DNA from: Camelus dromedarius
Taxonomy: Eukaryota
Direction of reading: 5' to 3'
Length of the DNA: 64,000 nt
NCBI RefSeq assembly: GCF_036321535.1
Contig: NC_087444.1
Coordinates: 71,796,001 to 71,860,000 of the forward strand
Shown here piece after piece: positions 47,123 to 47,368 of the stretch; position 1 is the first letter of the stretch; each line of letters opens with the position of its first letter. A model generated the notes under the pieces. That model did not search any database, was not told where the DNA came from, and saw only the letters and a list, made by a program, of their open reading frames with translations. Both the position numbers and the translations under genes were made by a program.

Positions 47123-47368
47123 AAGGCCAGACCCAGGCCCAGAACCCTCGTCGCTGTCTGGCCTTGGACAAGCCTGAGAAGGAGGTGACCCCATCCCCAG
47201 ACCAGAAAGAAAGAAACGTGGTGGGAACCACCACCCCTCCAAGATGCCCCGACTCCTACAGTCACCCCAAGGCTGCGTCATCCCCGTCTCAAGGTGACAG
47301 AAAGGGAGGATGATTCCAGTTGACATTGCTGGATATGGCTGAGAACAGCGTCCACTGTGACATCTCAA
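47123..47368 (+). CDS. MEIOSIN: MEIOSIN exon containing an in-frame TGA at 47311-47313 (alternative end at 47293)
   Basis: cccag|AA; EGQTQAQNPRRCLALDKPEK...GDRKGG*FQLTLLDMAENSVHCDIS; donor A|gttggt at 47368. Confidence 0.85.

Follow-up and report, generated by a model that had tools for sequence, protein, structure and literature searches.

Does the dromedary carry a broken copy of a gene for meiotic entry? The question is raised by an in-frame TGA codon in MEIOSIN (BHMG1), which the preliminary description of this locus, made from the DNA alone, had presented as a premature stop, with a base-call error, a segregating null allele and a fixed change bypassed by splicing as the options. We analysed the gene in a window of 64,000 nucleotides of Camelus dromedarius DNA (contig NC_087444.1, positions 71,796,001 to 71,860,000, forward strand), to which all coordinates below refer, together with camel transcripts, other camelid assemblies and orthologs from other vertebrates. 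The explanation that we favor, with a probability of roughly 90%, is that camel mRNA splices the TGA out via an old upstream donor and that an intact MEIOSIN of 562 amino acids, minus 25 linker residues, is made.

The dromedary MEIOSIN gene

The gene in the window is the dromedary ortholog of MEIOSIN (BHMG1), as attested by the bHLH domain, the HMG box, orthology and genomic position. A phmmer search with the HMG-box exon retrieves MEIOSIN/BHMG1 proteins, and a word-index search yields 261 homologs from many mammals, under the names 'meiosis initiator protein' or 'basic helix-loop-helix and HMG box domain-containing protein 1'. Alignment of the squirrel, elephant and pangolin orthologs to the window (tblastn) delineates 13 coding exons on the plus strand between 37.07 and 53.58 kb, the sequence of exons 11-13 being 75-93% identical to the squirrel and elephant orthologs. 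Exon 1 (37070..37140) contains the start codon (MWGSSKY...), exon 2 (42499..42589) encodes the bHLH basic region and helix 1, and exon 3 (44793..44904) encodes helix 2; exon 4 (46126..46260), exon 7 (49429..49529), exon 8 (49830..49985), exon 9 (50401..50474) and exon 10 (51436..51600) are defined by transcripts and the spliced reading frame. Exon 6 (48330..48438) begins with (G)CWGKNSAQD..., and the HMG box starts in exon 11 (51674..51918), continues in exon 12 (52688..52777) and ends in exon 13 (53411..53579), which also encodes the C-terminus and the stop codon, with the 3'UTR located further downstream. Exon 5 is discussed in the next section.

The spliced product of the window is 1689 nt long, with GT-AG at 12 of 12 introns and a single open frame of 562 codons, and its translation is 100% identical to the dromedary protein XP_064346084.1 (meiosis initiator protein) from the MWGSS methionine onward. 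In P0171, which is identical to this product, the HLH (PF00010) scores 23.8 bits against a cut-off of 20.7 and the HMG box (PF00505) 30.9 bits against a cut-off of 25.4; translations of single exons give no Pfam match, both domains being split over exons. Downstream of the gene, SIX5-like and DMPK-like reading frames are present on the minus strand (55-58.7 kb and 61.1-61.7 kb, respectively), which matches the human DMPK-SIX5-BHMG1 neighborhood (PMC4863877).

The stop codon is intronic in camel transcripts

The TGA occupies positions 47311-47313 and is in frame with the exon that starts at 47123, behind the acceptor ...ctcccag; in the frame from 47125, the window sequence translates as ...SPSQGDRKGG-stop-FQLTLLDMAENSVHCDIS. 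Both the letters and the frame agree with the preliminary description, and the exon start at 47123 is confirmed by transcripts. The other 12 coding exons, including those of the bHLH and the HMG box, are intact as had been stated, and the human sequence quoted there is in line with the primate orthologs, which read GGQSQLTLLDLAEDTIHCDIS. What does not hold is the location of the TGA within an exon. Two contigs assembled from public sequencing runs, L001 (4268 nt, SRR33129662) and L002 (2084 nt, SRR33129663), are spliced cDNAs that align to the window exon by exon with 99-100% identity. In both, the alignment to 47120-47294 is followed by that to 48328-48439, with base 47293 joined directly to 48330 and the junction reading ...ccgtctcaag/gctgctgggg.

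As used in camels, coding exon 5 thus extends over 47123..47293 (plus strand, 171 nt) and ends at the donor CAAG/GTGACA, with the GT at 47294-47295; intron 5 extends over 47294..48329 (1036 nt, GT...AG) and ends at the acceptor ...ctcgtag/G at 48329/48330. Because camel mRNA uses this upstream donor, the T at 47311 is removed with intron 5. The transcripts end exon 5 at 47293, 18 nt before the TGA, which falls on bases 18-20 of the camelid intron and is in the frame of the ancestral long-form coding exon 5. With 47293 joined to 48330, the mature mRNA contains no stop upstream of the normal one, as a premature termination or null allele would require; the label of a premature stop in MEIOSIN misleads, because no such stop occurs in the mRNA that camels make. 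Among the options initially listed, bypass by splicing is seen directly in the spliced transcripts.

The 75-nt segment at 47294..47368, encoding GDRKGG-stop-FQLTLLDMAENSVHCDIS, belongs to the exon in the long form of other mammals and to the intron in camelids; at its end, the ancestral downstream donor CAA/GTTGGT (47366..47374; exon end 47368, phase 1) is intact in camelids. These 25 codons are missing from every camelid database protein (...SQG/CWGKNSAQD) and from L001 and L002, where assembled contigs display the dominant isoform only and minor use of the downstream donor could go unseen. The skipping is present in seven camelid gene models from four species, namely Camelus ferus (EPY84971.1), C. 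dromedarius (KAB1274467.1 and XP_064346084.1), C. bactrianus (XP_010945391.1) and the alpaca, Vicugna pacos (isoforms XP_072822933, XP_072822935 and XP_072822936), and in one protein called on the Logan contigs L001/L002. The two contigs come from adjacent run accessions, that is, from two libraries that probably belong to one project, and carry the Bactrian-type allele, with Ala in exon 11 where the dromedary has Val. For the dromedary itself, we infer splicing at 47293 from the identical local sequence, with one difference in 401 nt around exon 5 that falls in the upstream intron, and from the identical RefSeq model.

Two other arrangements of this region were considered and dropped. A micro-intron at 47294-47319 (27 nt, ending ...ttccag) falls short of the length of mammalian introns and does not occur in the transcripts. 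A phase-2 donor at 47372, which would join exon 5 to exon 7, was abandoned when the orthologs revealed exon 6 at 48330-48438.

Other features of the locus

Several features of the window lie apart from exon 5. The exon 6 acceptor may be alternative as well: in the C. ferus protein EPY84971.1, an upstream acceptor (48293-48329) places nine extra residues, VIILTCLVG, ahead of exon 6; squirrel isoform X1 is extended in a similar way at this place, and in the whale and hippo models 12 residues are inserted at this junction. In some camelid and elephant models (P0175, P0109 and P0008, as well as XP_064346084.1 with its MDYISQKAARSSLE start), the N-terminus is extended, and these extensions align to exons further upstream, at 23688-23765, 33992-34231 and 34146-34340, which suggests alternative first exons or start codons.

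At the 3' end of the gene, L001:1445-4268 continues from MEIOSIN into the SIX5 region (window 53580-56676), with a gap at about 55602-55870, the borders of which are consistent with an intron on the minus strand (CT...AC). The 3' ends of the convergent MEIOSIN and SIX5 transcripts may overlap, or the two may have been merged in an unstranded assembly. A masked run of N at 60554-60709 separates SIX5 from the DMPK-like 3' coding exon (minus strand, 61.1-61.7 kb), at about the place expected for the DMPK 3'UTR. Five tRNA-like Rfam matches (34-44 bits), intronic or upstream of MEIOSIN, are located at 23205-23276, 26549-26621, 30605-30676, 40670-40740 and 41971-42043 and are probably copies of tRNA-derived SINEs rather than tRNA genes.

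Two exon 5 donors in mammals

The upstream donor (exon end 47293) and the downstream donor (exon end 47368) are both in phase 1 and are separated by 75 nt. The GGTGAC of the upstream donor is kept in whale, zebu, ibex, pig, rhino and Hipposideros and is missing in cheetah (GATGAC); the downstream donor is kept in all aligned species except pig (AATTGG). The upstream donor scores 2.7 bits, with a U1 duplex of -6.6 kcal/mol, and resembles another donor used in the gene, ATG/GTGACT, compared to about -1.2 bits and -2.6 kcal/mol for the downstream donor, which is weaker than all 12 used donors; the position weight matrix is approximate, such that these numbers give the direction of the difference only.

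Annotated short-form proteins are found beyond camelids in goat and sheep, white-tailed deer (X2), banteng (X2) and seven bats. At the transcript level, the caprine contig L013 (SRR35241953) uses the upstream donor (...tttcaag/gctgctg), the long frame being open in the ibex genome, and P0073 (from a 2245-nt contig, in a 90%-identity cluster that otherwise consists of Equus proteins) uses the downstream one. The two sites form a pair of alternative 5' splice sites: both are GT donors of equal phase, and across species each of them is used in transcripts. Thus, the donor pair is an old alternative splicing event, one outcome of which persists in camelids while the other is closed.

Changes in the same segment or at its downstream donor are observed in other mammals. 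The genome of the bat Hipposideros larvatus (GCA_031876335.1, L011:24027-24140) carries an independent in-frame TGA after the first two codons of the segment (GD-stop-KGG) and an additional 6-nt deletion inside the LTLLD motif, and its RefSeq model is the short form via the upstream donor. In pig (NC_010448.4, L007:~9685-9695, aligned to 47366-47374), the sequence is AATTGG compared to AAGTTGG elsewhere, with loss of the GT of the long-form donor; the pig models in this region (P0129, P0159 and P0169) are mutually inconsistent. Several phyllostomid and related bats are represented by short-form gene models only.

Origin of the TGA in the camelid stem

Comparison with other camelid genomes, which had been proposed at the outset, finds the TGA and both donors unchanged in C. 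ferus (GCA_000311805.2) and in V. pacos (GCA_048564905.1), with whole-gene identities to the window of 99.6% and 97.6%, respectively. Being common to the dromedary, C. ferus and the alpaca, the TGA predates the split between Old World camels and the llama lineage (Camelini and Lamini), which occurred well over ten million years ago, at odds with the recent event envisaged in the preliminary description. In outgroup DNA, sperm whale, zebu, ibex, pig and cheetah have AGA at this codon and black rhinoceros has CGA; the ortholog proteins read GG-R-SQLTLLD in squirrel, RG-R-AQLTVLD in elephant, GG-R-SQLTLLE in rhino and GG-Q-SQLTLLD in primates. Because four artiodactyl outgroups and the cheetah have AGA, and only the rhino CGA, the camelid change would most parsimoniously be AGA>TGA, an A>T transversion from the artiodactyl ancestral codon, and the CpG transition CGA>TGA that had earlier seemed plausible is rejected.

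The skipped segment accumulated three substitutions on the camelid stem, at 47311 (A>T), 47315 (C>T) and 47320 (C>T), all inside 10 nt, and these could be a single multi-base event. They amount to 3/67 comparable sites, versus 6/43 in the adjacent intron, all small counts, and versus 9/154 in the kept part of the exon (Fisher P=1). So few stem changes would fit either a TGA that arose late on the stem or a splicing-related constraint; the segment may have been constrained through much of the stem lineage or may have another role.

Taken together, the history is very probably as follows. Exon 5 has two in-phase 5' splice sites, both old and both predating the camelid TGA; between them, the codon AGA for Arg turned into TGA in an ancestor of the camelids, and, with camel mRNA taking the upstream donor, the TGA leaves with intron 5 and both DNA-binding domains are retained. 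The long isoform would then have been permanently lost in camelids, and the short isoform would be enough for camelid fertility. Either order of origin of the donor preference and the TGA is compatible with the data.

Selection and alternative explanations

Between dromedary and alpaca, the short-form coding sequences differ by 9.5 synonymous and 10.5 non-synonymous changes, with a dS of 0.025 that equals the genomic divergence, a dN of 0.008 and a dN/dS ratio of 0.33; the synonymous excess compared to neutrality is significant (binomial P=0.008). These values indicate that purifying selection acts on camelid MEIOSIN and that the gene is not in decay. The only point in favor of a pseudogene is the stop itself, which is in frame in the main annotated exon form of most mammals; against decay stand not only the selection but also a short-form reading frame free of other lesions in four species, the existence of correctly spliced polyexonic transcripts and the scores of both domains above the Pfam cut-offs, so that this explanation is very unlikely. 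Likewise, the locus does not qualify as a unitary pseudogene, given that the 562-codon frame is intact in dromedary and alpaca DNA and the models are intact in four species. Even less likely, to the point of being negligible, is a base-call or assembly error at 47311 that would conceal a true Arg codon: single-base errors do occur in assemblies, and this prior is all that speaks for it, but the identical T is found in two further assemblies of two other species, that is, in three independent assemblies from three species, and the gene models of five camelid annotations leave the segment out without exception. In mice, the loss of MEIOSIN is recessive, and a heterozygous carrier of a null allele segregating in dromedaries would be viable and could have been sequenced; but a TGA shared by the C. 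dromedarius window and the C. ferus and V. pacos assemblies has to be fixed or ancestral, and it is absent from the mRNA, which leaves the null allele with a vanishingly small probability.

Two further explanations concern the fate of the long form. TGA is the leakiest stop codon and also the selenocysteine codon, and the long form might, in principle, still be made by readthrough or recoding. However, a search of the whole window at the Rfam gathering thresholds yielded the five tRNA-like matches only and no SECIS or other recoding element, the TGA lies outside the observed mRNA, and the base that follows it is U, the favorable one being C; this scenario is hardly credible. Distinctly less improbable, albeit still unlikely, is that both donors remain in use and that the downstream product, with its stop, is directed to nonsense-mediated decay as a form of dosage control (unproductive splicing), which would add to the favored explanation. 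Camelids show no change in the downstream donor or in the invariant intron bases that follow it (GTTGGTCTCTTTCC), and the segment changed little on the camelid stem, as would fit such a role, but the segment is in neither L001 nor L002, and no donor of the gene is weaker than the downstream one. Removal of the TGA via the old upstream donor, with an intact short form as the product, remains the explanation that we favor.

The 25 residues lost from the linker

The segment removed in camelids contains the motif LTLL[D/E]MAE, recognizable versions of which are present in MEIOSIN of koala, newt, caecilian and skate; the tortoise version has diverged further. In a 42-sequence alignment, two leucines of the motif are at least 90% conserved, and the overall conservation of the segment is similar to that of other linker islands. 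In an AlphaFold2 model of the rhino long form based on the same alignment, the bHLH helices occupy residues 30-83 and the HMG box residues 485-541, and the segment belongs to the long region between them, with a pLDDT of about 30. The 25-residue linker segment is accordingly predicted to be disordered, and this model, at a pLDDT of about 30, assigns no structure to it and gives no structural hint to the role of the motif.

MEIOSIN is reported to interact with STRA8 and TIP60/NuA4 components, and its disordered regions have been suggested to fold on binding (PMC13637641, 2026 Genes Dev); this paper does not mention isoforms or the 25-residue segment and gives no residue ranges. A literature search for MEIOSIN and camel returned nothing relevant, and we found no paper on the camelid stop or on loss of the motif.

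It is an even bet, in our judgment, that camelids irreversibly lost the long isoform, that Hipposideros larvatus did so independently and perhaps also pig and several bat lineages with the short form only, and that the motif is dispensable for meiotic entry or the short form is the general working form.

Comparison with known systems and implications

The mechanism is ordinary, an alternative donor, with a modest evolutionary twist. As in other pairs of alternative 5' splice sites, the same-phase GT donors of MEIOSIN, 75 nt apart, give rise to long and short isoforms, both used in nature; the difference is that, in camelids, a fixed nonsense codon closes one of the outcomes and the event is effectively constitutive. 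The case also resembles nonsense-associated altered splicing and exon skipping, known for instance from disease genes, in that a frame-preserving splice choice excludes a nonsense codon, but the upstream donor of MEIOSIN is older than the TGA and is used in species without the stop, and there is no sign that the camelid nonsense codon caused the splice choice. Gene-loss screens encounter false inactivations in alternatively spliced parts of exons when, as here, a stop appears under the exon model of another species; in contrast to such cases, retention of camelid MEIOSIN is shown directly by transcripts and selection.

Variants of MEIOSIN that lack whole domains offer another comparison. Zebrafish and hagfish MEIOSIN have no bHLH, and Meiosin-delta-bHLH mice are sterile (PMC13637641). 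Like the camelid protein, these variants lack part of the mammalian architecture and inform on which parts are needed; unlike them, camelids retain the bHLH and the HMG box and miss only 25 linker residues, and, unlike the delta-bHLH mice, camelids are fertile.

The practical effect on annotation is nil, since camelid annotations already model the short form. A false alarm is nevertheless removed: camels do not carry a broken copy of this meiotic-entry gene, and the case illustrates how apparent gene-killing mutations arise when the genome of one species is read with the exon model of another. Beyond that, camelids and one bat are natural experiments in which a stop closes a segment of MEIOSIN whose motif is conserved throughout the jawed vertebrates, and the 25-residue segment is a cheap target for deletion in mouse. 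If the loss of the long isoform is real, the lineages concerned would be natural knock-outs that bear on the dispensability of an ancient motif.
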